Shown: positions 1,251 to 26,263, numbered from the stretch's first letter. The stretch is 26,330 nt of DNA from Macrostomum lignano (GCA_002269645.1 NIVC01005098.1:1-26330); one strand, 5' to 3'. Made by a program: numbers and translations. Notes: a model not told the origin generated them from the letters alone.

Positions 1251-1518
1251 CTTGTATGTTGTAACTAATGGGTGCAACCTATTTATCAAAACCACTTGTC
1301 CGCGTTATTTCACTCCCTAGTAGGTGGTTAGTGCATTGACATCCGGTCCGAACTTGTCCCGTCACGTCCCCGAGACCTGTCTACGTGTAGCATTGAAACC
1401 CGTGAGCCGTACGTGGAAGCTTAGAAATCTGGATAGTTTGATGGGTGGCTAAACAGCTACTTGCACCGAATAGAAATTTACTCTACTAGGAGCAGCAATT
1501 AAGCAATTGAAGCCAAAC

Positions 1519-1828
1519 CTCGATTGCCGCCAACCGCTGCGGATTGCTCCCACACGCTCGGGCTGATGAGACGGCCCAGTGTCAGAGGTGCAGGTCCCGT
1601 CGCCTGCTGTTGCTGCTGCTGCTGCGGCTGCTGCTGCTGCTGCAGATGAAGCTGCGGCAGCTGCGGTGATTGTTGCTGCTGCACAGCGCCCAGCATCAGC
1701 AGGCCCATGTCCTGCATAAAGTTCCGCCCGAAGTTCATCTCCGACTCCTCGTGGGCGAAGGCGCAGAACGGACCCCTTGGACAGTAGTTCTGCTGCATGA
1801 CATCGTTGCACTTTGTCGACTTATAAAT
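1519..1828 (-). CDS. unk: Unkempt exon 4 (last CCCH finger plus polyQ tract)
   Basis: Encodes IYKSTKCNDVMQQNYCPRGPFCAFAH. Acceptor cAG at 1830-1829, donor GTTTGG at 1518; length 310 nt keeps phase. Confidence 0.85.
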
Positions 1829-2016
1829 CTGCGCGAGGGTACGTTGGCAAGAAAATTCGCGTCTATCTACTGACAGTAGAATAAAAAACGTGTGTATTTC
1901 ATTAACAATCACAAGTAAAATCAGCGCCGTCAAGTCAGCTGACGAGATACAGTCACGTGATTTATTGCTTTCGCCCTTAAACGCTAAATGGAAGAACACG
2001 GATCTGCGGCGCTCAC

Positions 2017-2134
2017 CTCTGGGTGGAACTGCTGCTCGGTGCGGGTGTGGCAATACTGACAGTCGTCGGCCTGCTCGCAGAGGCTGCTGTCAAGCCATTC
2101 GTCCGAGCTCTTCACTGCCGGACAGGGAGTTGAT
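2017..2134 (-). CDS. unk: Unkempt exon 3
   Basis: Encodes STPCPAVKSSDEWLDSSLCEQADDCQYCHTRTEQQFHPE. Canonical AG (2136-2135) and GTGAG (2016) boundaries; phases match both neighbours. Not in the ORF track. Confidence 0.9.
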
Positions 2135-3840
2135 CTGCGATTTGGAATAAGAAGGGAGAGGTAATTGTCCAGGCTGAAGTCAATTGTCTGCGGACTGAAC
2201 TGCGCGACTGGAACTAGTTTGACTGGGCCTTTGTGTATTTACTGGGTGGAAGAGTGAGAGATTGAGTAGCTAAGCGTGGATGGCGAGAATGGAGAAAGGG
2301 CAATCGATTTTTCGAAATACAGAGCCCCATCAATCGATACCATTTCGTTGACTAAATTCATCTCGAATAGTGCCATACCGATGCAAGGTAAGGACATCCA
2401 TCTAGCCTGTTAATAATATCAACAAGGAAGTGCAGGTCAATTTGATGAATTCCCTGCCGGAACAAATGGAACATACTCGTGCCTCCAATTAAACTGTGAA
2501 TCGTGTCAGCTGCCTTGCACTTTATCAGGTCGCTACGTATATCTCTATTTATTAAGCCACACCATGCGCGCATGCATCTTGTTAAGTTTGAAGTGCAGCT
2601 AATGGGGGAGCTGACAGCACACTGAATCAAGCAGTGGATATCGCACTTCACTACACTGTACAGTTTGATAAGAGTACAGCTTTGGAAGGGGGAAGAAGGA
2701 GCAGGGGAGAGAGGGCTTAGCAGCTTTAGATTCGTAAGTTAGAGCCGGGCAAACCCGGACAGTCGCTCTGTGGCTAGTATTTATTGATTTTTCCGCCGCT
2801 GGCTGCGCAAGCCTCGCCTCCCCCTCTGCCCGGTCGGACCGAACCAGCCCCCCCCCCAGTGCTCATCGATCCGCGCTGCATTTGGGGTTGCTGTATACGG
2901 GGCTCTAAAAATAGATTTTCGTAAAGCAGGGCGACGGAAAGAGCGTCAGTTCGTATTTGGGGCTGGGGGAGGGGCAAGGGCTGAAGCGGCGAGAGAGGAA
3001 AGACAGTTCAATAAGCTGTCAGACCTGTACAGCCCCGCTCACTGCGTTCAACAACAACCAACCAGCTGTACGTCCGCGTTCTGCACCCCCTTTCTCCGTC
3101 CTCTCATTCGGCTCTTGTAGTTCCAACCAAGTATTCATTTCTTTGCCATATAATCTCTCACCCTCCCCTCTGTTCGCATGCTCAAGGCCTAAGCCAGGGA
3201 GGCCTCCTCCTTCGCGAAATGAAAACAGAAAAAGCTTTTGAAGGGGGAGAGGTAGGGGATGAAGATGAATCGAAAGAGCTTTGCTGACGGAAGCATCTTT
3301 TCCGGCTTCCCGCCCGAATATGCATTTGGCCGTACTGCATGCGCCTTATAGATAAGACTGCTTCGGATTGCACTCAAAATCCAAATTCCTATAGTGCAAG
3401 CTACCTAGGAAATTGCATGCAAGGGGTACGGACACCCTGATTCCACCGCCTCTGCTGGACAACAGGATTAGTATTGACCGAGATTTTTCTAGTAAAAGCA
3501 CAGCAGGACGACAATGCTATTCGCAAAAAATTAGAAATTAAAAAAACCGTTTAAAGAAGACAAACTTATAGTTTAGCTTGTGTTGCCGATGGTCATCTAA
3601 GCTGAGAAAGTTATGCGCCAATCGCTAATCAAACAAGCGTCAAACTGGGTGGACAAGGAAGATATATTTAACAAAGTCTTTGTTTTGATTCGTTACTTCC
3701 GTGTTCTATCAGTGGTGCTAGGCTCACAGGCTACGTACACGGGCACAGCACTCACGCAGAGTTTATAGACTTCCATGACACACGTACACTTCTAGTGTGC
3801 CTTTATAATATGCACCTCACTGGACCTTGATCACACTCAC

Positions 3841-4452
3841 CTGTACTTGTGCACGTGCGGTCCCCGACGCTTGTCCTTGGCGTTGTGATAGAATGGACAG
3901 GCGTAGCCCTGACGGCACATTCGCGGCGGCTTGCGGCACTGCTCGGTTTTGTAGTTGGCCAGCACATAGCCCATGTCGTTCCATTTGGGATCTTCGGACA
4001 GGACACGCTCTTTCTCCAGGCTGGCCGGCAAGTTCACAGGACAGTCGGCGGCCTCTTGAACTTCGCGGATGTCGTAAACAGGCACGCGCAGATCGTTGGC
4101 GCCGTGAGCAAAGGCGCAGTGGGCACCATTTCGTGAGCAGTGACCTCGGGCGTCCGTGTCGTGAATGCAGGTGCCGGTTTTAAAGTAGCGCAGATGGTAG
4201 CGCCTCTCAGTGTCGCCGGCATTTCGGTGCAGGTAGGGACAAGCGTCGGCGTTGGGGCACTCCCCTCGGGTCTCGTCGTACTTGTCGCAATACACATCAG
4301 GCGAATAAGTGAAAGTTCCGTCCGCTTTGCGCAATGGGCGACGCCGGCGCTGATTTGGAAAATGCCAATGAAAGCAGGTGAACGGCTTATGCTGCGTGCA
4401 CTTATGATTCGCAAACAGTGGGCACTGCTGAGTGCGGAAGTCGCGGAGATAA
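3841..4452 (-). CDS. unk: Unkempt exon 2 (tandem CCCH zinc fingers)
   Basis: Encodes YLRDFRTQQCPLF...CFHWHFPNQRRRRP...ERRYHLRYFKTGTC...YKTEQCRKPPRMCRQGYACPFYHN, diagnostic of Unkempt. Acceptor at 4454-4453, donor GTGAG at 3840. Confidence 0.95.
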
Positions 4453-4905
4453 CTGCAATTTGTCAGAAAAAATAAAAAATTAGTAAAGATCCACATATTG
4501 GTATGCATGATACAACATTTACAAAGGTTTGGAACAATTGGAACTGCACATTGCAAAAAGTAGTGCAAAAATTTGTTAAAACAAAACGAAAAGTCTCTAT
4601 GGTAATAAAAATAAATTTATAGCATTTTGTCTCTCAATTATTTTTTAAAACTACTATCAAAATACTTTTAACAGAAACTATTCTGCCCCTGACAAATATA
4701 TGAAAAAGTTAAAAAAAATGTGAATTAATTTTTGTTTCAATGTAGCTTAAACATTTGTTTATATTCTTTATCTAATTTTACTCACAAAACTAATTAAAAT
4801 GTTAAATGTTAAAACAATATAAAAGCTCAGCCATTAAATCAGAAAGTAAATCCATAATTATAGATAAGCAAAACAGCAAAATAATGAATTTAAACTGAGA
4901 CTTAC

Positions 4906-5105
4906 TTTAAATGTTGTGGTTTTACAAAAACAGTTGGCATACCTATTCCTTGTGTTGCTAAATCTAACTCTGGGGGGAGTGGTACACTGCCTGTCAAGTT
5001 CTGAGGCGACGCTTGAGATGACATCATTGGTAGACTTGTAGAGAGAATAACATTAGATAAAGTTGCTAAAGAAGAATTCTGTGCTATGGGAGATAGTGAT
5101 GACAT
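4906..5105 (-). CDS. unk: Unkempt first coding exon
   Basis: ATG at 5105. Ends ...KPQHL-AA|GTAAG; AA+T joins in frame to YLRDFR, matching the Unkempt N-terminal (E)KPxHxxYL motif. Confidence 0.8.
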
Positions 5106-6104
5106 ATTCTAATGTCAAACGGAACATTAGACAGCTTTTTACTTTGAAAAGCCTATTTGTTTGTTGCTGTAAAAGCTGTCTGAAATTCCTGCTGTTGATA
5201 GTACGGAAATCATTGTATCTAATGTAAATACTAATAATGTAGTTTTTTCAAAGCATCCTGCTTATTTTTTTAAATATATATTTCGTAAATATAAACTTTT
5301 AGTAAGAGTTGTACTTTTATTAGGTATGTAAAGCTCTTTTTGTTAATCTGCTACCGTCGCAAGGTACCTTTAAACTGAAAAAAAAGTTTCTAACATAAAA
5401 GACGCTAACTACGAACTTCATCGACCCGACATCAATGATGTTACTACTCTGATTGCATTGTGTTTGTCTGAGTTCACAGAGAGACAGTAGTCTTGTAGTT
5501 TGCTAGTTCACTTCTTCGTCTGAAGCGAACAAATTGTAGGACGCTTAAATTTAACTTAAGCTAATTAACTTTTCTGGCAGTAAACAGGGTGAATTTTAAC
5601 ATAAGTGCCTAGGTGCTAGGCGTAGGCCTAGATATATTATGCTTAATGCTTAGAAAAAGGTTAAATACCTTTTGTTTGCGTAAAGCAATTTGATATATAT
5701 ATACATTTGGACTTGTATGCATATGTATACATTTGTATACATTTGGACAAAAATGATCAGTGTCTAATACTATTAGGCGGCATAGGCCTAAAGCAAAATA
5801 GACTGCAAAAGCATTAGGCCTAGAAATTTAATTTTAAGATAGGGGCCTACAAATTTTTTTTCAATTTTTTGATTAATTTTCAAAAGTATGGTTTATTTTT
5901 ATTTAAGCAACTTAGATTTATCAAATAAAATAAAAATACAAGGTTATTAATATACTACTACTACTAGGTGAAATTCAAAAATTAGGGGCAAGTTCTGTCA
6001 AAATTGTTTTTGGCAATTCAGAAGTAACATGCACAACCTTGGGAATCACTTGGCCATTTCTATTGGCAACACACACACATACAAATTGCTATTGGCTAAG
6101 AGCA

Positions 6105-6114
6105 GTCACGTGAC
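6105..6114. promoter_or_regulatory. Palindromic E-box/CLEAR-type motif GTCACGTGAC between divergent unk and RhoGDI
   Basis: Exact 10-bp palindrome in an otherwise AT-rich region. Function is not shown by sequence. Confidence 0.3.
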
Positions 6115-6174
6115 TAGGCCCTATTATTCTGTCTAATAGTAATTTATATGTGTATGTTGCCAATAGAAATGGCT

Positions 6175-7230
6175 GGGTGAATTCTGTCAAAATGGCCACA
6201 CAACAAAATGGCCACACTGTCAAAATGGCCACACAACAAAATGGCCACATAAAACAAAATGTTACACTTACAGATGTCTATCACATTTACTACTATTAGG
6301 ACTTTATTAATGTAGTTTCGAGTGACATTTAGCTCCAATACTATAGTGCACTACAAAAATCCAAAAGCATGCAAGTACCTTTGTGATTATTTCTACTTTT
6401 GTGATCAATTTAACTTGGGTTTTTTTGCCAGAGACAAGGTGTGAAATCGCACCTTGTGCCAAATTTCAAGGTGCGATTTTAAGGCTTAGAGTGCAATTTC
6501 TCTTGAGTCTTGTTTCAGACAACTAGGAATGTATATTTTAATATCTTACATAAGGCTATAGCCATAGGCTATATCGCCTATATGACTTAATAGGATTTAA
6601 AGAGTTATTTTGTTTCATATTTTAAAGCAGTGCATGAAAAATAGCTTAAGCATGGTTAAGCCTTTAAATAAATGGTTATAAGACCGCACCTAAACCGCAC
6701 CTACTTTTTTAATTTTAGTGTGCAATTTTAAAATTTAAGGTATATACGCATACTCTGTGCACAAAAAAACCCTGCATTTAACTTTTGTGGTAAATTTTGC
6801 TTTGTGATTCATTGTACCTCTATTACTCTATGATGCATTTAACATTTCATTTCAACAATTACTTAACTAATTGTTGGTCACTCTATAAAATACAATTTTG
6901 TCTTCGCTTCTTTGATGCATTCTTTTTGGATGCATGTTGCCTGCATAAATTTCATAATATCTCAATGCATTCACTTCTTTTGCATTTTGATGCAAAATGA
7001 TGCAAGTACCAAAGTTAAAATTAATTAAGAACATGAAGTATACTCAATTACATCAATGTATTACTTTAAGAATAACAAGAGTTTAGAATATTCATAGTAG
7101 AGGCTGTGTTTATCATACAATATTAAGAATGAAACAAGTGGGATACCTGCAATACTTTTTGTTTTATGTAGGCATTTGGTTTTGTAGCCATTTTGATAGT
7201 GTGGCTGTTTTTTATGTGGCTGTTCTGCAT
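6175..7230. repeat. Possible degenerate TIR element with CAAAATGGCCAC subterminal repeats
   Basis: Left end GGGTG..TCAAAATGGCCAC repeated about 4 times (6175-6250); inverted copies near 7185-7230. No TSD found. Confidence 0.35.
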
Positions 7231-7719
7231 GTGGCCATTTTGATAGCACCCTATAAATCCCTAGGTTGCACCCAAGCATGAAAGGCAAAAAGCTTTAAAA
7301 AATATAATTTAGTTTAAAAAATAGAAATATATCTATAAAAGCACAAATTATCTATGTGTAATCTTATTAATTATAAAATGATTTGGTAAAATATTAAATT
7401 TACTTATGTCATATGACTAAAATAACTCTTATAGAAATGATAGAAAAGGTCTTACAGCATATTTATTAATGGTAGAATGGTAGAATGGTAAATGGCAGTG
7501 CACGGGGATGGCTCACAACACAGACAAACCATTTTTATTATATGGGATTATAGACATATATCCAGGGGTCCCTAATATAGTTGGCATACAATTTCTGTCA
7601 TTTTAAAGATATAATTATTTATTTGTCCAACTTATATTTTTTAAATTTTTATTCCTGTATATCTATGTAGTTTCTATTTATTAAGACATAAATAATTAAT
7701 ACTACATAGAAATACATAG

Positions 7720-8505
7720 GGCTCATTCCATATAAGCATGGTCGTAACATGACAGGCTATTTTTACTTATAAAATGAAATATAATAATAGAATATACTAA
7801 ACCAATATTTTAAATGAAAGATAATTTTGTCAAAAATATTTTTATAGAGTTTCATGTAGATATCATCATTAGTATAGATGCTATTAAACCTTGAATGGCA
7901 CTTATGGTCGTAACAACAGGATTTTTGACATATAGAAACTAAAAGGTAAAAGTCTTATAACATTTTTATTTTTGATATTTTGCAATACATTTTTTAAAAT
8001 TTGACTAAGAACATCTTTAGTAATCATACTCTTTTATTAGAATATATAAACTCAAAAAGGCAACAAAGATACAAAAGAAAAGGCAGCCTTATGGTCGTAA
8101 CATTATGGTCGTAACATATTTTTTTCTGTCAATTCAGTAACTTTGAGGTACCAATATATTAAAAATATAATAGATTATTTGGTCACCAATACTTTTATCT
8201 GATGATGCAAGTACTATACTTTTATCTATAGTTTGTTTCAACCTTCCAAAGCTTTCTATTTGTTTTTAAAAGGTACACAAACTTAATGATGTCTTTTGCT
8301 TAGAAAAATGTTTAAATTTTTACAAAAATGACTTTTTGCCACTTGATAGCATACTAATCTAACATTTTATCATTCATTTATTCTTAGATTGTAGATATTA
8401 CACATAAAAAACATTTGGTAAAAAAATGGCTGATAAGACAATGGCAAGCAAAAATATTGACTTTTTTCTATTTTCCAAAAATGTCCATCTTATATGGAAT
8501 GAGCC
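7720..8505. mobile_element. Non-autonomous DNA transposon (MITE-like), 786 bp
   Basis: 17-bp perfect TIR GGCTCATTCCATATAAG / CTTATATGGAATGAGCC flanked by ATAG on both sides. Four internal ATGGTCGTAACA motifs. Confidence 0.8.
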
Positions 8506-8870
8506 ATAGATAGTGTATAGATTGTCTTTTTAAAATTTATTCTACTATATATTCTGCCACTTTTTTAATTATAGATAGCATCTAGTGCATGCTAAAAGTG
8601 CTATATGCTAAATGACTAGCAAGCCGTGCACTGTCTCCTTATTATAAAATACAAACAAGCCAACCATTTTTAGGCTTACAAGCAACATACAATGTCTGCA
8701 GTTATATTAATATCTAAGAATTTGAGAATAAAAATGCAATATATTTTAGCTTTTAATATAGAAAGGACTTGCTAGAGCATAGTACCCCTTGTCCTAATTT
8801 GTAGCTTCAAAAAGATAAAAACAACAAACTTTGATGCAAAAGCTTTAATCACACTAAATTGAAAAAAAAA

Positions 8871-9264
8871 ATGGCTGAAAAAGGCGACAATGATGATCTG
8901 GTCCCGGAGGACACTGGCTTCAAGCCGCCGGCGCCAAAGTCTCTGGACGAGATTCTCAACGCCGACAAGGACGATCCGTCCCTTGAGAATTATAAAAAGC
9001 AACTGCTCGGCAACACTGTGCCGCCTGTGTTTCCTGACAATCCTAGAAATGTGATTGTGCAGAAAATACAGATTGAATTCCTAGGCGAAAGCCGCGAGCC
9101 AGCCAACATCCAACTGATGGATGCGGATCTGTCAGTGCTTAAAAAGTCACCAATCGTGATCAAAGAAGGGGTAAATTATCGGGTGAAAGTGTTTTTCTAT
9201 GTGCAACGTGAGATCGTGGCCGGTTTGCGGTACATCAACTGTTCGTACAAGATGGGCATACGAG
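8871..9264 (+). CDS. RhoGDI: Rho GDP-dissociation inhibitor exon 1
   Basis: Encodes FKPPAPKSLDEILNADKDDPSLENYKKQLLG...IKEGVNYRVKVFFYVQREIVAGLRY. Donor G|GTGAGT at 9265. Confidence 0.95.
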
Positions 9265-9460
9265 GTGAGTTGCCCATAATGTTAGTGTGAATGCGAGTAT
9301 CTAATCTAAGAAGATTCCTATCAATAAGCTGCCCCTAATCCCCCAGAAAAGTTGCCATTTGACTGCCACTAATCCTTCAGAAGTGTTGCTACTAGACTGC
9401 CACTTATCCTCCAGAAGAGTTCCCATTGGACTGGCACAAATCCTCAAGAATATTAGCCAT

Positions 9461-10876
9461 TAGACTGGCACTAATACCCCATAAGAGTCGTCTATAGACT
9501 GGCACTAATACCCCATAAGAGTCGTCATTAGACTGGCACTAATACCCCATAAGAGTCATCATTAGACTGGCACTAATACCCCATAAGAGTCGTCATTAGA
9601 CTGGCACTAATACCCCATAAGAGTCGTCATTAGACTGGCACTAATACCCCATAAGAGTCGTCATTAGACTGGCACTAATACCCCATAAGAGTCGTCATTA
9701 GACTGGCACTAATACCCCATAAGAGTCGTCATTAGACTGGCACTAATACCCCATAAGAGTCGTCATTAGACTGGCACTAATACCCCATAAGAGTCGTCAT
9801 TAGACTGGCACTAATACCCCATAGAGTCGTCATTAGACTGGCACTAATACCCCATAGAGTCGTCATTAGACTGGCACTAATACCCCATAAGAGTCGTCAT
9901 TAGACTGGCACTAATACCCCATAAGAGTCGTCATTAGACTGGCACTAATACCCCATAGAGTCGTCATTAGACTGGCACTAATACCCCATAGAGTCGTCAT
10001 TAGACTGGCACTAATACCCCATAGAGTCGTCATTAGACTGGCACTAATACCCCATAAGAGTCGTCATTAGACTGGCACTAATACCCCATAAGAGTCGTCA
10101 TTAGACTGGCACTAATACCCCATAAGAGTCGTCATTAGACTGGCACTAATACCCCATAAGAGTCGTCATTAGACTGGCACTAATACCCCATAGAGTCGTC
10201 ATTAGACTGGCACTAATACCCCATAGAGTCGTCATTAGACTGGCACTAATACCCCATAAGAGTCGTCATTAGACTGGCACTAATACCCCATAAGAGTCGT
10301 CATTAGACTGGCACTAATACCCCATAAGAGTCGTCATTAGACTGGCACTAATCCTCTAAAAGAGAGCCATTAGACTGGCACTAATCCTCTCAACGAGAGC
10401 CATTATACTGGCACTAATCCTCTAAAAGAGAGCCATTATACTGGCACTAATCCTCTAAAAGAGAGCCATTAGGCTGGCACTAATCCTCTAAAAGAGAGCC
10501 ATTATACTGGCACTAATCCTCTAAAAGAGAGCCATTAGGCTGGCACTAATACCCCATAAGAGTCGACATTAGACTGGCACTAATCCTCTCAAAGAGAGCC
10601 ATTAGACTGGCACTAATCCTCTAAAAGAGAGCCATTATACTGGCACTAATCATCTAAAAGAGAGCCATTAGGCTGGCACTAATCCTCTAAAAGAGAGCCA
10701 TTAGACTGGCACTAATACCCCATAAGAGTCGTCATTAGACTGGCACTAATACCCCATAAGAGTCGTCATTAGACTGGCACTAATACCCCATAAGAGTCGT
10801 CATTAGACTGGCACTAATACCCCATAAGAGTCGTCATTAGACTGGCATCCTCTCAAAGAGAGCCATTAGACTGGCA
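9461..10876. repeat. 34/33-bp minisatellite in RhoGDI intron (~40 copies)
   Basis: Unit GACTGGCACTAATACCCCATAAGAGTCGTCATTA, with a block of variant GACTGGCACTAATCCTCTAAAAGAGAGCCATTA at ~10345-10710. Degenerate copies start at ~9340. Confidence 0.95.
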
Positions 10877-11896
10877 TAGAAATTCTAAGCCATAGAAAAG
10901 TGCTTATTAAACGCAGCTGAAAGGAGAACGCAAAAAAGAAGTGTGTGCACAGAGTAGAAAATTTTGTATAATACTCGTAAAAAACCAACGTAACACTACA
11001 GCAATGCACATTTGGCATGACTCAAGTTCGTGTTCAGGTTGGCAATATAGCAGAGTGTTAAGTGTGAAGCCTTAGTGTGAAGTGCTTGGGCTGTACAATG
11101 TGTAGAGTTATATGTAGTGTCCTGTGACCAGTTTAGATATTCTCTGAGCGTTTACGTGTATGGCAAATTTAGTAATCTGGCATATAATATAGCTTCAATG
11201 CGCAGTGTTTGCTTAGCAGCTGGCACAGTGGCATTATCTGTCCCAACTTTAATAGGCACAAATGAACAACTGCCGCGTCAAGTTGTATGCAATGCATTGA
11301 CTTATTAAGTATGTTAACGTTTTAGTAAAGTACGTAGATTCTAATAAATAGAGTCCCAGCCTTGACCAGCTAGCTAGCTCACTCACTGCTCAGCACCACA
11401 GCTACATAAACCCTAGATTAGTTCACCCTGGTTCCGATAGTTATGCTTATTCCAAGGGCAGAAATAGAGGAGCTGTTTTTAGAACAATATTGCCAGAAAC
11501 AAACTAAAAAAACATTTAGTAGATGATCAAATAAAGACAATAGACAAAAAATTTAGAACAAACACAAAATTACCTATGAGTTAATGCAGAGTGACCTATC
11601 ATTTAATATTGCTTTTGTCATGCTAAGTCAGCAAACAGACATTCAAAGTTGAAAGCCTACATAACAAACTCAGGTGGGGCCATAGACAACACACAAACTT
11701 GCAATTTAGCACTGACGTTAATCAACTCATTTACTGTGAAATATAAACTGCAAGTTTATGTGCTGTCTATGGCCCAACCTGTGTTTGATCTGTAGGCTTT
11801 CAACTTTCGATGACCGTAGATGACCTTGACATGACAAATTTTGGATGACCTGTGCTCGGCGCACCCCTAGCAATGACTCACTTAACTGTCCCTCAG

Positions 11897-12096: not shown

Positions 12097-12249
12097 TCAA
12101 TTAAGCAACTCTCTTTAATTCTAATTAGACCGATTTGAGACATGGAAAATAAAAATTACCTTTTTTATCGTTCGCTTATCCCGTGAATCCACAGGCCCCT
12201 GGTTACCTGGAATGGAAACGGACCCGCGCATCACCCCAAGATCTTACCT

Positions 12250-22886: not shown

Positions 22887-23393
22887 CCGCGGGCTTTGTG
22901 CCCCAGTAGCAATAGTTTCAGGTTCGTAAATACCTAATGTATCTATAGGTGGAGCTTTGGGTTTATCGAGTCTCAACTCTTTTAATTCCATATCGGTAAA
23001 AGTTTCAACATCTAAAATTCTATTTCTATCTTTTAAATATTTTTCATATAATTCAACCGCGGTTGATAATTCATGAATCGTTATCTCTCCGTCATCCAAT
23101 ATTTTTTGCACATATAAATATAATTGATTTTTATATTGTTTTGCAACATCTCTTAAAGATTTATATTTTTCCTTTCTTTTTTTAAGATATAATTTAATTG
23201 CTAAAAGTATTGATAAGTTCCTGATCAATTCAAAACCTGATATTGAGCCAATTGAAATACCTAAAAATAATTGAGATAAATTAAGAGTTGGAATAGATTG
23301 TAAAATACCTAAAACGATTACACATAACATTGATAAGCTTCCAAATCCAATATTGAAAAAGTCACTGATGAAAATTACAAACTTATTATCACC
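22854..23393 (-). pseudogene. GasderminX-like Polinton membrane protein, apparently 5'-truncated
   Basis: Hydrophobic hairpin, then KKRKEKY..LA and QKILDDGEITIHELSTAVELYEKY, resembling the Polinton ALxDGxISxEEF motif. The frame extends past ATG 23330 (SDFFNIGFGSLS) to a stop at 23394-23396 with no upstream start. Confidence 0.55.
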
Positions 23394-23819
23394 TCACGAA
23401 ATAGAATAAATCAACTATTAAAATCAAATAATGCTCGAAAAAATAATCATACTATTGATTACCTTGGTTGCTCAATTGAATTCTTTATTGATTGGTTAAA
23501 TTTCACAAAACATTATTATGTTCCAAAAGACTATGGTGGTGCTTTACATATTGATCATTTTATTCCTGCTTCTTCATTTAATTACAAAGACGAAGATCAT
23601 ATGAAAAAGTCTGAACATTGGACAAATAAAAGATACTTAGCTGCTATTGATAATAAAACTAAATTTGTTAAACAACCAACAATTGAAGAATTTGCAAAAC
23701 AATTGGTGCTATCATGTATTTTTAAGGCTATAAAAAATGAGCAATCATGCGACGCATGCGAACCAAAGGTTCGATCGGGCGAAGTCCGCGTTCCTTCGGA
23801 ACGATCAATTAGTATTTGA
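23337..23819 (+). pseudogene. HNH endonuclease (giant-virus/phage type), no start codon, 5'-truncated
   Basis: Open frame DENYKL..SRNRINQLLK...TIDYLGCSIEFF..WL...DYGGALHIDHFIPASSFN..DED..K..HWTN..YL...DN..K matches the LGCS...WHIDH.IP..SF...HY.NL.PL...N..K HNH family. The ORF track shows only the last 72 aa. Confidence 0.75.
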
Positions 23820-23925
23820 AGGAGGATTTTTAGATGTTCAAAAAGGATTAACAAGCTTACCACCAATATTTACTACTGGGAGGTATACGGGTGAGCTACA
23901 CCTACCATCAATGAACTTCACAGGT
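23737..23925 (+). CDS. PLA2X-integrase fusion, exon 1
   Basis: TATAAAAAATG start. Ends GELHLPSMNFTG, the first half of the parvovirus-type PLA2 Ca-binding loop (ELHLPxxNxxGPGT). Confidence 0.85.
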
Positions 23926-24228
23926 TATCCCGTGGCCTGAGTGAGGAAGGCAATGTCCTTGCTAGTCACTATTTGTGGCGACATCTCCAAATTGCGTGAA
24001 ACCCGTCATACAGCTTCAAGTACCACTTCAATTGAGAAATCTTTTGAAGGAACAGAGGTAACTCCTCTTCCCAAAGGTAAAAAGCTTGAAGACATGGTGG
24101 CAATGCGCAGCCAAGCTCCTAAGTATTTTAAATATAAGGAGAAGGTTCAGAGAGCAGACGGAGATGGGCGGTAATTATCGCCGCTTAAGGTGTGCTCCAG
24201 CCTCTTTCGAAAGATTGAGGGTAAACTA
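23926..24228 (+). ncRNA. Group I intron, subgroup IC1, 303 nt
   Basis: P/Q/R/S-like elements AAATTGCGTGAAA, AATGCGCAGCCAAG, GTTCAGAGAGCAGA, TAAGGTGTGCTCC. Pairings P1, P2, P2.1, P3, P4, P5abc, P6, P7, P8, P9.0, P9 and P10 all form. Removal restores NFTG|PGTRL in frame. Confidence 0.93.
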
Positions 24229-25377
24229 CCCGGCACTCGCTTAGATTTGAGATTAAATCCTGACAATACTCCAAAATCTGATTCAATTCCAATAAATGGG
24301 ATTGATTGGTTAGCATACTATCACGACTTAGCATATAGAGATGCTGACAAGAACCCGCCCGAGGAAGCATTAAGATTAAAACATGAAGCCGATCAAAAAA
24401 TGATTCAAGGATTAGATAACTTGCAGGGATTATCGGTAGGGCAAAGATTAACTAGGTGGATGGTTAAAAAGATTTTGCAGTCTAAAGTTAAATTTGGTTT
24501 GGGAATTAATTATAATCAACATGGAAATAATTGTGTCGAGTGTTTATTATTAAGTGGTGGTGGGTTAAGTTCTGATGAGGCAAAGATTCTTCATAAAGAA
24601 TATCGAAAACCTAAATTTTATAGAAAAATCATGAACTTCAAAAAGAATGAAATTTGGTATGCTGATTTAATGTCGATGCCGAACGAAAGAGGATATAAAT
24701 ATATCTTAACCATATTAGATGGTTTTACTCGATACGCGTGGGCTGTTCCTTTAAAATCCAAAAAGGGAGAGGAGGTTGCTGCTGCTTTTAGAAGTCTTGG
24801 AGAAAAAAGCGAAAGATTGTGTGTTGATGAAGGAAAAGAATTTTACAATCCTCATATGTATAAATTGTATCATTTTGAAAAAGGAAAAGAAAGGAAAAAA
24901 GACGCGAATGGGGAGTATATTAATAAAATTTATTCTATTTATGGAGAGAGTAAAAACGCATTAATAGAAAGATTTAATCGAACTTTAGGTAAGAAATTAT
25001 GGTTTCAGTTTAGTCTTAATGGTAACCAAAAGTGGGTAAAAATATTACCAGACGTAGTGAAAGATTATAACAATTCATATCATTCAGCTATAAAGATGAC
25101 TCCTCAACAAGCTTATAACAATCCTGAAAACGTTAAAGTTACTTTTGGAAAATTTGAAAAAAATAAAAAGAAATCTTTTAAGGTTGGTGATTCTGTTTAT
25201 ATCTATAAATGGAAAGATAAGTTTGAAAAAGGAAGAAAAGGATATTGGAAGATAAGTGAGAAATTTACTATCAGTAAAGTTTTAAATACCAATCCTACAA
25301 CCTATATAATTGCTGATAAGGACGGTGAAGAAATATTGGGTTCGTTTTATGAGAACCAACTAATATCAGCGAACTAA
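24229..25377 (+). CDS. PLA2X-integrase fusion, exon 2 (spliced product 445 aa)
   Basis: PLA2 motifs PGTRL, DWLAYYHDLAY, HEAD, KFGLG. Integrase DDE triad WYADL / VDEGKEF / IERFNRTL. C-terminal FKVGD..V..FEKG...W..E.F...Y...D..GE.I.GSFYE..L; no chromodomain. Confidence 0.93.
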   Translation, partial: PGTRLDLRLNPDNTPKSDSIPINGIDWLAYYHDLAYRDADKNPPEEALRLKHEADQKMIQGLDNLQGLSVGQRLTRWMVKKILQSKVKFGLGINYNQHGNNCVECLLLSGGGLSSDEAKILHKEYRKPKFYRKIMNFKKNEIWYADLMSMPNERGYKYILTILDGFTRYAWAVPLKSKKGEEVAAAFRSLGEKSERLCVDEGKEFYNPHMYKLYHFEKGKERKKDANGEYINKIYSIYGESKNALIERFNRTLGKKLWFQFSLNGNQKWVKILPDVVKDYNNSYHSAIKMTPQQAYNNPENVKVTFGKFEKNKKKSFKVGDSVYIYKWKDKFEKGRKGYWKISEKFTISKVLNTNPTTYIIADKDGEEILGSFYENQLISAN

Positions 25378-25387
25378 GTTCGAACAA

Positions 25388-25612
25388 TTACTTGAGACAA
25401 CATGGTAGTAAATTTTTTATAACAAACAAAAACAATATTATTACTATAATTGTTACTAATATTATTATTGACATTTGTTCAACTGTTATCAAACTTAAAT
25501 TTTCATTAAGTTCATTAATCGGCACATTTCCGATGTAGGAATAGTTTACCTTCATTTTTTTATATATATTTTTCACAATAAATGTCGTTTCTGTTATAGA
25601 ATAATAGTTCAT
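25388..25612 (-). CDS. Small membrane protein (74 aa) with C-terminal TM helix and PCC motif
   Basis: TAAAAAATG start; hydrophobic SIIILVTIIVIILFLFVI. Confidence 0.6.
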   Translation of the reverse strand: MNYYSITETTFIVKNIYKKMKVNYSYIGNVPINELNENLSLITVEQMSIIILVTIIVIILFLFVIKNLLPCCLK

Positions 25613-25628
25613 TTTTTAAATATTTTTT

Positions 25629-25942
25629 TCACATAAAAATTTCACTTTCATTCTCTGAATCACTGGTTTCATATGAACTATTTGTTGATTCGGAATCTGT
25701 TGATCTAACCTCCCAATCATCCGAATTTAAATAATCTCCAAGTTGAAATATTAACTCACCCTCTTGTTCTAAATCAACATCTCATCTAGCTCTAATGGAT
25801 AAAGTTTTAGGTCGTGCTTGTCGTCATATTTTAAATAAACTTCATCAATTATTCCATTCAAAATATGTTGTTTTATTATCTCTGCATTTTTAGCAACAGT
25901 CTCAAAAGTATCACTAACAGAAAAGGTGTAAACTCGGGTCAT
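25629..25942 (-). CDS. Acidic hypothetical protein (~104 aa) with 1-nt frameshift near 25783
   Basis: TAAAAATG start, MTRVYTFSVSDTF...YPLELDE / DVDLEQEGELIFQLGDYLNSDDWEV...SDSENESEIFM*. The two frames join with one added base. Not in the ORF track. Confidence 0.55.
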
Positions 25943-25959
25943 TTTTAGTAACAGAAAAA

Positions 25960-26263
25960 GACCCTTCGCGCCTGCGGCGCGGGCAAGGGGTTATAGAGTA
26001 GTAGTATAGAAAAAGACGCTTCTAGATCAGACCTTATTTTAATGGCCGTTTGTAAGGTCTTAAGAGGGGGGGCGCGAGGGGGGTGTTGGGGAGTGTTTGG
26101 AAGTGTTTGGAAGTGATTTTTATTGTTAGGGGTGATTATGGGTGATTAGATGTGTTAAGGGTGTTTAGATGTGTTTTTTTATTTACCCCCGTGTCCCCCT
26201 CTAGACTTAAAACGGTCATTAAAAAAGTGCTCTGGGTCTAGAAGCGTCTTTTTATATACTACT
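25960..26263 (-). repeat. Right TIR
   Basis: Reverse complement of 15496-15802. Confidence 0.95.

Follow-up and report, generated by a model that had tools for sequence, protein, structure and literature searches.

The DNA stretch analysed here, referred to as the window, comprises 26,330 nucleotides of Macrostomum lignano (GCA_002269645.1, NIVC01005098.1:1–26330) and contains an integrated Polinton, a virus-like DNA element, in which the gene for a PLA2-like domain joined to an integrase is interrupted by a 303-nucleotide insert. This insert is a genuine group I intron. The carrier, the interrupted gene and the intron have the following bounds.

15496–26263, no strand assigned: Polinton/Maverick-type element, 10,768 bp with 32% G+C, defined by its AG...CT termini and terminal inverted repeats (TIRs), in a flank of 42% G+C
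23737–23925, plus strand: exon 1 of the PLA2-like/integrase gene, 63 codons from the ATG, ending ...NFTG, placed by end-to-end alignment with the N-termini of relatives
23926–24228, plus strand: group I intron, matched by RF00028 at 64.2 bits, with bounds taken from intron-less relatives and a 3′ bound that agrees with P10 and P9.0
24229–25377, plus strand: exon 2, encoding the remaining PLA2-like domain (HDLAY), the rve integrase core and the C-terminal domain, 382 codons open to the stop, identified by PF00665 and homologues

The group I identity was established with Infernal cmscan and Rfam 15, by which RF00028 (Intron_gpI) was matched at 23916–24219 on the plus strand over its full, untruncated length (model positions 1–253 of 253). 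The score exceeds the gathering cut-off of 50 bits, with an E-value of 6.7e-16 when a 751-nucleotide stretch was searched and 2.4e-14 when the 26-kb window was searched. The intron has a G+C content of 45.5%, two in-frame stops and no open reading frame (ORF) of its own. A first-pass annotation, made from the sequence alone, had described a complete IC1 group I intron of 303 nucleotides with in-frame stops and had proposed the Infernal search as a check; the group I assignment, the length and the stops were all borne out, while the word complete needs a caveat, as the canonical 3′-terminal G is absent. In Rfam gathering mode with the fast filters, the intron was missed in window positions 1–26330, which is a filter artefact rather than a true negative, and laxer filters (Evalue mode) recover the match above the cut-off. 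Because of this loss under the default filters, routine annotation could overlook such introns, which may explain the lack of reports from animal assemblies. Rfam and tRNA scans of the 26-kb window detected no tRNA and no second Rfam family.

The insertion point is fixed by the relatives of the interrupted gene, for which the two exons were searched separately rather than joined. Exon 1 is 69% identical to P0241, can be aligned with relatives from their N-termini as far as an invariant Gly and carries the invariant residues D33, Q35, P42, F45, Y50, E53, H55 and G63. Exon 2, which starts PGTRL..., has 458 homologues, the full-length ones covering 99–100% of the query; most combine PF08398 (the parvovirus-type PLA2-like domain) with PF00665, and some also have a chromodomain. 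Among 141 readable sequences, at least 66 run uninterrupted through ...[FY]xG-PGT..., including P0001/P0241 (72% identical), P0243, P0004, P0005 and at least 60 more. Because these intron-less relatives read straight through ...NFTG|PGTRL..., the insert corresponds exactly to 23926–24228, and their Gly/Pro junction upholds the first-pass statement that the insert splits the Ca loop of the PLA2 domain between NFTG and PGT. Both exons are free of stops and frameshifts, and exon 2 carries HDLAY, a catalytic-type HDxxY motif. PF08398 reaches only 17.9 bits on exon 2 alone, below its cut-off of 23.9, with the loop divided between the exons, compared with 33–44 bits for uninterrupted relatives. The name PLA2X, which had been given to the gene at first, has to be withdrawn: the gene encodes a PLA2-like domain fused to an rve integrase, whereas the adintovirus PLA2X consists of PLA2 plus a pX-like domain (PMC8502044).

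It had also been stated that the insert has no usable GT-AG ends. This is correct in that no GT..AG pair excises the insert; however, three in-frame, stop-free, phase-0 pairs do exist, and these are what an explanation by an ordinary spliceosomal intron, or by an unspliced insertion with a chance likeness to a ribozyme, could draw upon. None of the three restores the junction of the relatives, each of them keeping at least five extra codons inside the conserved Ca loop, and a spliceosomal GT-AG model was rejected since no pair removes the 303-nucleotide insert. In addition, chance would have to account for a full-length covariance-model match with an E-value of 2.4e-14, and for the same core being kept in relatives whose host protein is only 48–60% identical. 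We consider such an explanation extremely improbable.

The architecture of the intron was compared with the covariance alignment and checked base by base, and every pairing listed in the first-pass annotation was found in place. The following parts were delimited.

23930–23939, plus strand: internal guide sequence, forming P1 with the 5′ exon and P10 with the 3′ exon (covariance alignment and pairing check)
23940–23979, plus strand: hairpins P2 (23940–63) and P2.1 (23965–79) (pairing check and fold)
23993–24146, plus strand: P4-P6 domain, with P4, P5, P5abc and P6/P6a/P6b (fold z −3.05 and covariance alignment)
24150–24198, plus strand: catalytic core, with P7 (G-A bulge-GAGCA/UGCUCC), the 3′ strand of P3 (24160–66) and P8 (24167–82) (covariance alignment and pairing check)
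24199–24228, plus strand: 3′ region, with P9.0, the P9 hairpin (24202–19) and the 3′ tail (covariance alignment and pairing check)

P1 is formed by 23921–28 and 23932–39 and has eight pairs, five with the exon and three within the intron; in its core, CAGGU (23921–25) faces GCCUG (23935–39), with U23925·G23935 at the 5′ splice site. P10 joins 23930–34 to 24229–33 with four of five pairs, and P3 joins 23982–88 to 24160–66 with all seven. P4 pairs 23993–98 with 24104–09, and about 90 nucleotides are inserted at L5 of the Rfam model, where a P5abc three-way arrangement is found, consisting of P5a (24014–24/24076–91), P5b with a GAAA loop (24036–39), P5c (24054–68) and an A-rich stretch (24079–83). 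The receptor motif in P6a is made up of CCUAAG (24118–23) and UAAGG (24135–39). In P7, G24150, a bulged A and 24152–56 face 24193–98 with standard pairs throughout; relative to the Rfam consensus, two pairs are altered on both sides with pairing kept, in agreement with the earlier remark that P7 is compensated, while the bulged A and the guanosine-site G-C pair are unchanged. P8 pairs 24167–72 with 24177–82, and P9 pairs 24202–08 with 24213–19 around a GAAA loop, with two U·U mismatches. P9.0 (24199–200 with 24226–27, two of two pairs) is an addition to the original list.

When the 303 nucleotides were folded alone, with no prior model, P2, P2.1, P3, P4, P5, P5a/b/c, P6a/b, P8 and P9 were recovered; the fold has a z of −2.3, none of 100 shuffles being equally stable, and the P4-P6 domain alone reaches −3.05. 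As for the subgroup, the P5abc scaffold with its A-rich bulge, P2/P2.1 and the bulged nucleotide by the G-site of P7 are the features by which IC1 introns are described (PMC3679873 and PMC8395846). The architecture originally cited for IC1 (P2/P2.1, P5abc, the L5b GAAA with the P6a receptor and the bulged A of P7) is thus present, and an IC1-like (Tetrahymena-type) subgroup is supported, as an assignment made by architecture alone, Rfam having one model for all subgroups.

Intron-plus and intron-minus alleles, of which a survey had been suggested, were found together within single 90% protein clusters of relatives, whose introns were read from proteins (gene calls) rather than from DNA. The first 13 residues of P0002, P0042, P0258 and P0259 equal the translated end of the window's intron at 10 of 12 positions and are followed by PGT. 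The intron-plus P0002 shares one 90% cluster with the uninterrupted P0243, and the intron-plus P0007/P0249 share another with the uninterrupted P0250. The P0249 call includes 60 residues translated from within its insert, of which 16 of 23 match window 24100–24168, which spans P4′, P6, J6/7, P7 and P3′; relative to the window, this insert has an extended P8 region and a reduced P9 region. As judged from these translated sequences, at least two further lineages of the integrase family, with host proteins only 48–60% identical to that of the window, carry a homologous intron at this codon, and the intron is polymorphic for presence and absence among near-identical genes.

In one cluster of relatives (P0267, P0416, P0417, P0419 and P0420), the full-length protein consists of a zinc ribbon and an HNH domain followed by about 55 residues of intron-like sequence. 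The tails of this cluster match translated window 23959–24102 (58–60% identity, E 1e-11 to 1e-13), and the proteins terminate at the position that corresponds to the UAA of CCUAAG in the window. One member of the cluster and a PLA2-integrase of the intron-plus cluster are found on contigs of the same size (42,304). The simplest reading of the P0267 lineage is that its intron would house the HNH gene on the 5′ side of P3, the arrangement known from classical mobile introns, and would be a composite mobile intron.

An HNH gene is also present beside the intron in the window itself.

23346–23819, plus strand: HNH endonuclease gene remnant, with the catalytic domain kept and without the N-terminal zinc-ribbon part and start codon (relatives and fold)

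The 3′ end of this remnant overlaps the start of exon 1 in a different frame and lies about 110 nucleotides before the insertion site. An exhaustive HMMER search with the ORF retrieved 6360 relatives at E ≤ 1e-3, and the residues D70, H71, P74, N94, N103 and K106 are conserved. The structure, predicted from an alignment, has a predicted local distance difference test (pLDDT) score of 87 and matches giant-virus and phage proteins in BFVD with E-values of 5.5e-8 to 1e-4 and template-modelling (TM) scores up to 0.70; these comprise mimivirus L246, a Hyperionvirus HNH endonuclease, a Bodo saltans virus 'intron encoded endonuclease', Marseillevirus proteins and phage HNHc proteins. The top structural matches in the PDB are all HNH domains, at weak E-values above 0.05, and sequence searches of Pfam, PHROGs and the PDB with the ORF gave no match. 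Upstream of the remnant, no second copy of exon 1 or P1 and no zinc-ribbon part was found, nor was there microhomology between its 3′ end and the P2 region of the intron. With an HNH fold and the conserved His and Asn residues, ORF 23346–23819 is a putative remnant of an HNH homing endonuclease. There is no more than a hint that the intron came from a microbial eukaryote or one of its viruses: the folds closest to this HNH domain belong to phages and to giant viruses that infect protists.

The carrier had been called a Polinton in an animal nuclear genome, and this description holds, given TIRs with AG...CT ends, a protein-primed polymerase B, an rve integrase and a flank with unkempt and Rho GDP-dissociation inhibitor (RhoGDI) genes. 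Its further features, and those of the flank, are as follows.

15496–15802, no strand assigned: left TIR (inverted-repeat search)
25960–26263, no strand assigned: right TIR (inverted-repeat search)
17880–21380, plus strand: protein-primed DNA polymerase B (PolB) gene with an internal endonuclease VII domain and one frame change (relatives and domains)
1499–4568, minus strand: host gene (exons) for an unkempt-like CCCH zinc-finger protein (PF18384, PF25427, PF23035 and PF00642)
8859–9290, plus strand: host gene (exon) for a Rho GDP-dissociation inhibitor (PF02115, 92.9 bits)

The TIRs are about 305 nucleotides long and 94–95% alike. Both element termini (5′-AG...CT-3′) lie within the window, and in a check for a target-site duplication the flanking hexamers agreed at four of six positions. 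Full-length relatives of about 1150 residues cover the PolB gene (17880–21380) in two frames with 960–990 bits, and a 352-residue ORF corresponds to the N-terminal part of the polymerase; PF02945 was found in the gene and PF03175 in its relatives, the named ones coming from molluscs, cnidarians, an echinoderm and a spider (Mytilus, Nematostella, Gigantopelta, Anneissia, Araneus and Bradybaena), with many located on megabase contigs. The integrase is identified by PF00665 and the 458 homologues mentioned above. In the flank, the unkempt-like gene scores 246 bits, with about 70% identity to zinc fingers 1–3 of mouse UNK (5elh), and the RhoGDI exon scores 86 bits against RhoGDI structures.

These data support a Polinton integrated in an animal nuclear genome. 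The animal is taken to be of non-vertebrate type and not human, in view of the Polinton itself, the compactness of the host exons and the identity of only about 70% to mammalian UNK. The alternative is a chimeric or contaminated contig, in which an element of a protist or a protist virus was joined to animal DNA by assembly, as might be suspected from the difference in G+C content (32% in the element vs. 42% in the flank), from the right flank of only 67 bases with hexamers alike at four of six positions and from the HNH fold relatives in giant viruses of protists. However, both ends of the element are in the window with clean AG...CT termini, the named polymerase relatives are all animal and on megabase contigs, and the integrase relatives are on contigs of 40–180 kb, so that an assembly artefact is very unlikely.

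Starting from the ribozyme fold and its exact position in this gene, we consider it probable that the IC1-like intron in the Ca loop of the PLA2-like/integrase gene of an animal nuclear Polinton belongs to a system of RNA-catalysed splicing and HNH-driven homing. The pre-mRNA would be made whole by the intron RNA itself: the guide sequence would pair with the last five exon bases, with U·G at the splice site; the 5′ site would be opened by an external guanosine docked at the retained G-C pair of P7; and the exons would be ligated at a 3′ site positioned by P9.0 and P10. Between Polinton copies, the intron may move via endonuclease-driven homing. The ORF-less intron with an HNH gene outside it, as in the window, and the HNH gene within the intron of the P0267 lineage could correspond to the two states that 'collaborative homing' passes through on the way to a composite mobile intron (PMC3984707).

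Several points limit this reading or weigh against it. Splicing of the window copy is predicted from sequence and fold, and the pairings are those of a single DNA copy, the relatives having been read as translated gene calls. The placement of the HNH gene within the intron of the P0267 lineage comes from proteins, and the same proteins would result if HNH had been joined to the core by a deletion. The residue at 24228 is not the near-universal 3′-terminal G, a point on which the first-pass annotation was silent, and the Rfam alignment ends at G24219, nine bases before the boundary. Finally, the element shows decay, with TIRs about 5% diverged, one frame change in the polymerase gene, a truncated HNH gene and capsid, ATPase and protease genes undetected.

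The 3′ boundary at 24228|24229 is indicated alike by the intron-less relatives, P10 and P9.0. Seven gene calls of the other lineage begin with Met immediately before PGT, and P0007 reads ...RRM|PGT; because the codon before PGT is a Met or start codon, the introns of the P0007-type lineage end in G. A natural intron with A as its terminal residue, L2066 of Diderma niveum, self-splices fully in vitro (PMC3679873), and thus a non-G 3′ end is a departure with precedent rather than a proven defect. An intron ending at G24219 instead, with three extra codons (GKL) kept in the mRNA within the Ca loop, would explain why the RF00028 alignment stops there with the terminal G of the model, position 24220 being in frame with exon 2. 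In contrast, the intron-less alleles in the 90% cluster of the window-type intron-plus allele lack the GKL codons, G24219 is engaged as the closing base of P9, and P10 (four of five pairs) and P9.0 (two of two) suit 24228|24229, not 24219|24220. The P0007 lineage, moreover, has its G directly before the Pro codon. An end at G24219 is therefore unlikely.

It is quite possible, if somewhat short of even, that the window holds a fossil intron, whose ribozyme functioned in an infecting or transposing ancestor and which is now dead and unspliced in a silent PLA2-integrase gene. For the family as a whole this is compatible with RNA-catalysed splicing and homing; the two differ for this copy only. 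The missing terminal G speaks for a fossil, as do the 5–6% divergence of the inverted ends, the polymerase gene split over two frames, the HNH gene without its N-terminal part and the undetected capsid, ATPase and protease genes. Such a reading has to accommodate two exons that remain open over 445 codons and cover their relatives end to end, a core whose pairings are all intact, with the guanosine-site G-C included, and the complete self-splicing in vitro of Diderma L2066, whose terminal residue is A (PMC3679873).

Returning to the splicing and homing system, one may go further and propose, rather tentatively, that a group I intron lineage is resident and still mobile in animal Polintons, homing between copies, with an ORF-less stage accompanied by a free-standing HNH gene and a composite stage both present today. 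If true, ribozyme introns would for the first time be known from metazoan nuclear genes transcribed by RNA polymerase II, and the elements would hold a natural record of the assembly of a mobile intron. The free-standing and the intron-fused HNH genes bear on the origin of mobile introns.

Group I introns are well known in protein-coding genes of phages and giant viruses, and in animals they are known only from mitochondria of certain non-bilaterians. Reviews place every nuclear group I intron known so far in rRNA genes of microbial eukaryotes (PMC3679873, PMC8395846 and PMC9223047). Against the Tetrahymena-type IC1 introns of ribosomal DNA (rDNA), the window intron is alike in the P1-P9 core, P2 and P2.1, the extended P5abc, the GAAA L5b with a CCUAAG-type receptor in P6a, the bulged A beside the guanosine-site G-C of P7 and the U·G at the 5′ splice site. 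It differs in lacking P9.1/P9.2, in its very short P8, in its 3′-terminal residue and in its location, which is a protein-coding gene of an animal DNA element rather than protist or fungal rDNA. The intron is therefore an ordinary group I ribozyme in a new genomic niche.

The nearest counterparts by carrier are the RF00028 introns of 309–376 nucleotides reported in 2025 from protist Polinton-like viruses of Paulinella, Desmodesmus and Rhodomonas (PMC12220804). These are likewise ribozyme introns of similar size in a protein-coding gene of a nuclear-integrated, Polinton-related element; however, they interrupt a short gene without annotation that precedes the capsid gene, whereas the window has an animal host, a PLA2-like/integrase gene and an associated HNH endonuclease. 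The collaborative homing system resembles the window in that the intron lacks an ORF, occupies a conserved functional site and lies near an HNH gene, and in having relatives with HNH fused to the intron core and a presence/absence polymorphism. The window departs from it in that the carrier is eukaryotic, nuclear and virus-like and the HNH gene is truncated, with target-site cleavage putative. Diderma niveum L2066 shares with the window intron the natural lack of a terminal G (PMC3679873), but it is a myxomycete rDNA intron unrelated by insertion site or host, and introns at the L2066 rDNA site are classed IE in the related species Mucilago. With the PLA2 genes of adintoviruses and Polintons (PMC8502044 and PMC3671162), the interrupted gene has in common a parvovirus-type PLA2-like domain (PF08398) in an animal Polinton; unlike in PLA2X, this domain is at the N-terminus of an rve integrase, has no pX-like virion-core fusion and is split by a ribozyme intron.

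A literature search found no report of a group I intron in animal Polintons or adintoviruses. The host range of ribozyme introns is hereby extended to animal nuclear DNA, namely to a protein-coding gene of a virus-like element on an animal chromosome. Among related elements on large contigs, some carry the intron and some do not. A question that follows is how, in a polymerase II transcript, such an intron is removed and the resulting mRNA exported and translated.

Beyond the intron family, the only match at the DNA level was one of 48 nucleotides (blastn vs. phages, E 7e-3) to Brochothrix phages, which is uninformative. The segment concerned, 24106–24153 (intron positions 181–228, in the P6-P7 core), is 81% identical to phages A9, ADU4 and BtpYZU04, in which the matching stretches are unannotated or hypothetical and presumably belong to group I introns of their own.

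Within the AT-rich exon 1, a GC-rich run at 23745–23805 contains four short hairpins, one with a UUCG-type loop; this cluster is not stabler than shuffles (z −1.46). A 16-nucleotide hairpin sequence from it (23760–23775) is repeated exactly in the polymerase gene at 20936–20951, within the region 20920–20951, beside another small GC hairpin. The GC hairpins of exon 1 and the polymerase gene may be small GC-cluster insertions.

In the element, the terminal ~30 nucleotides recur in inverted orientation about 245 nucleotides inward in each TIR (15491–15522/15736–15767 and 26000–26026/26237–26263), so that each end of the element could fold back on itself. The endonuclease VII domain (PF02945) is located in the middle of the polymerase, as it is in most relatives in animal genomes. 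The stretch of about 1.9 kb between the polymerase gene and the HNH remnant (21400–23340), which is the expected place of the capsid-module genes, contains only small ORFs of 87–184 residues on both strands, with no family match; among the small ORFs of the 10.8-kb element, none gave a family or fold match to a capsid protein, packaging ATPase or maturation protease.

The left end of the element adjoins a 21-nucleotide minisatellite array, and no such repeat is seen in the short right flank. Minisatellite arrays occupy 9287–10990, 12191–12607, 13730–14347 and 14703–15611, with units of 33–34, 14–15, 31 and 21 nucleotides, respectively. Between the unkempt-like and RhoGDI genes, 4500–8500 is AT-rich (26–33% G+C) and contains inverted repeats (6205–6262/7154–7211) together with tandem AAAATGGCCACA-type motifs, possibly representing another small element.

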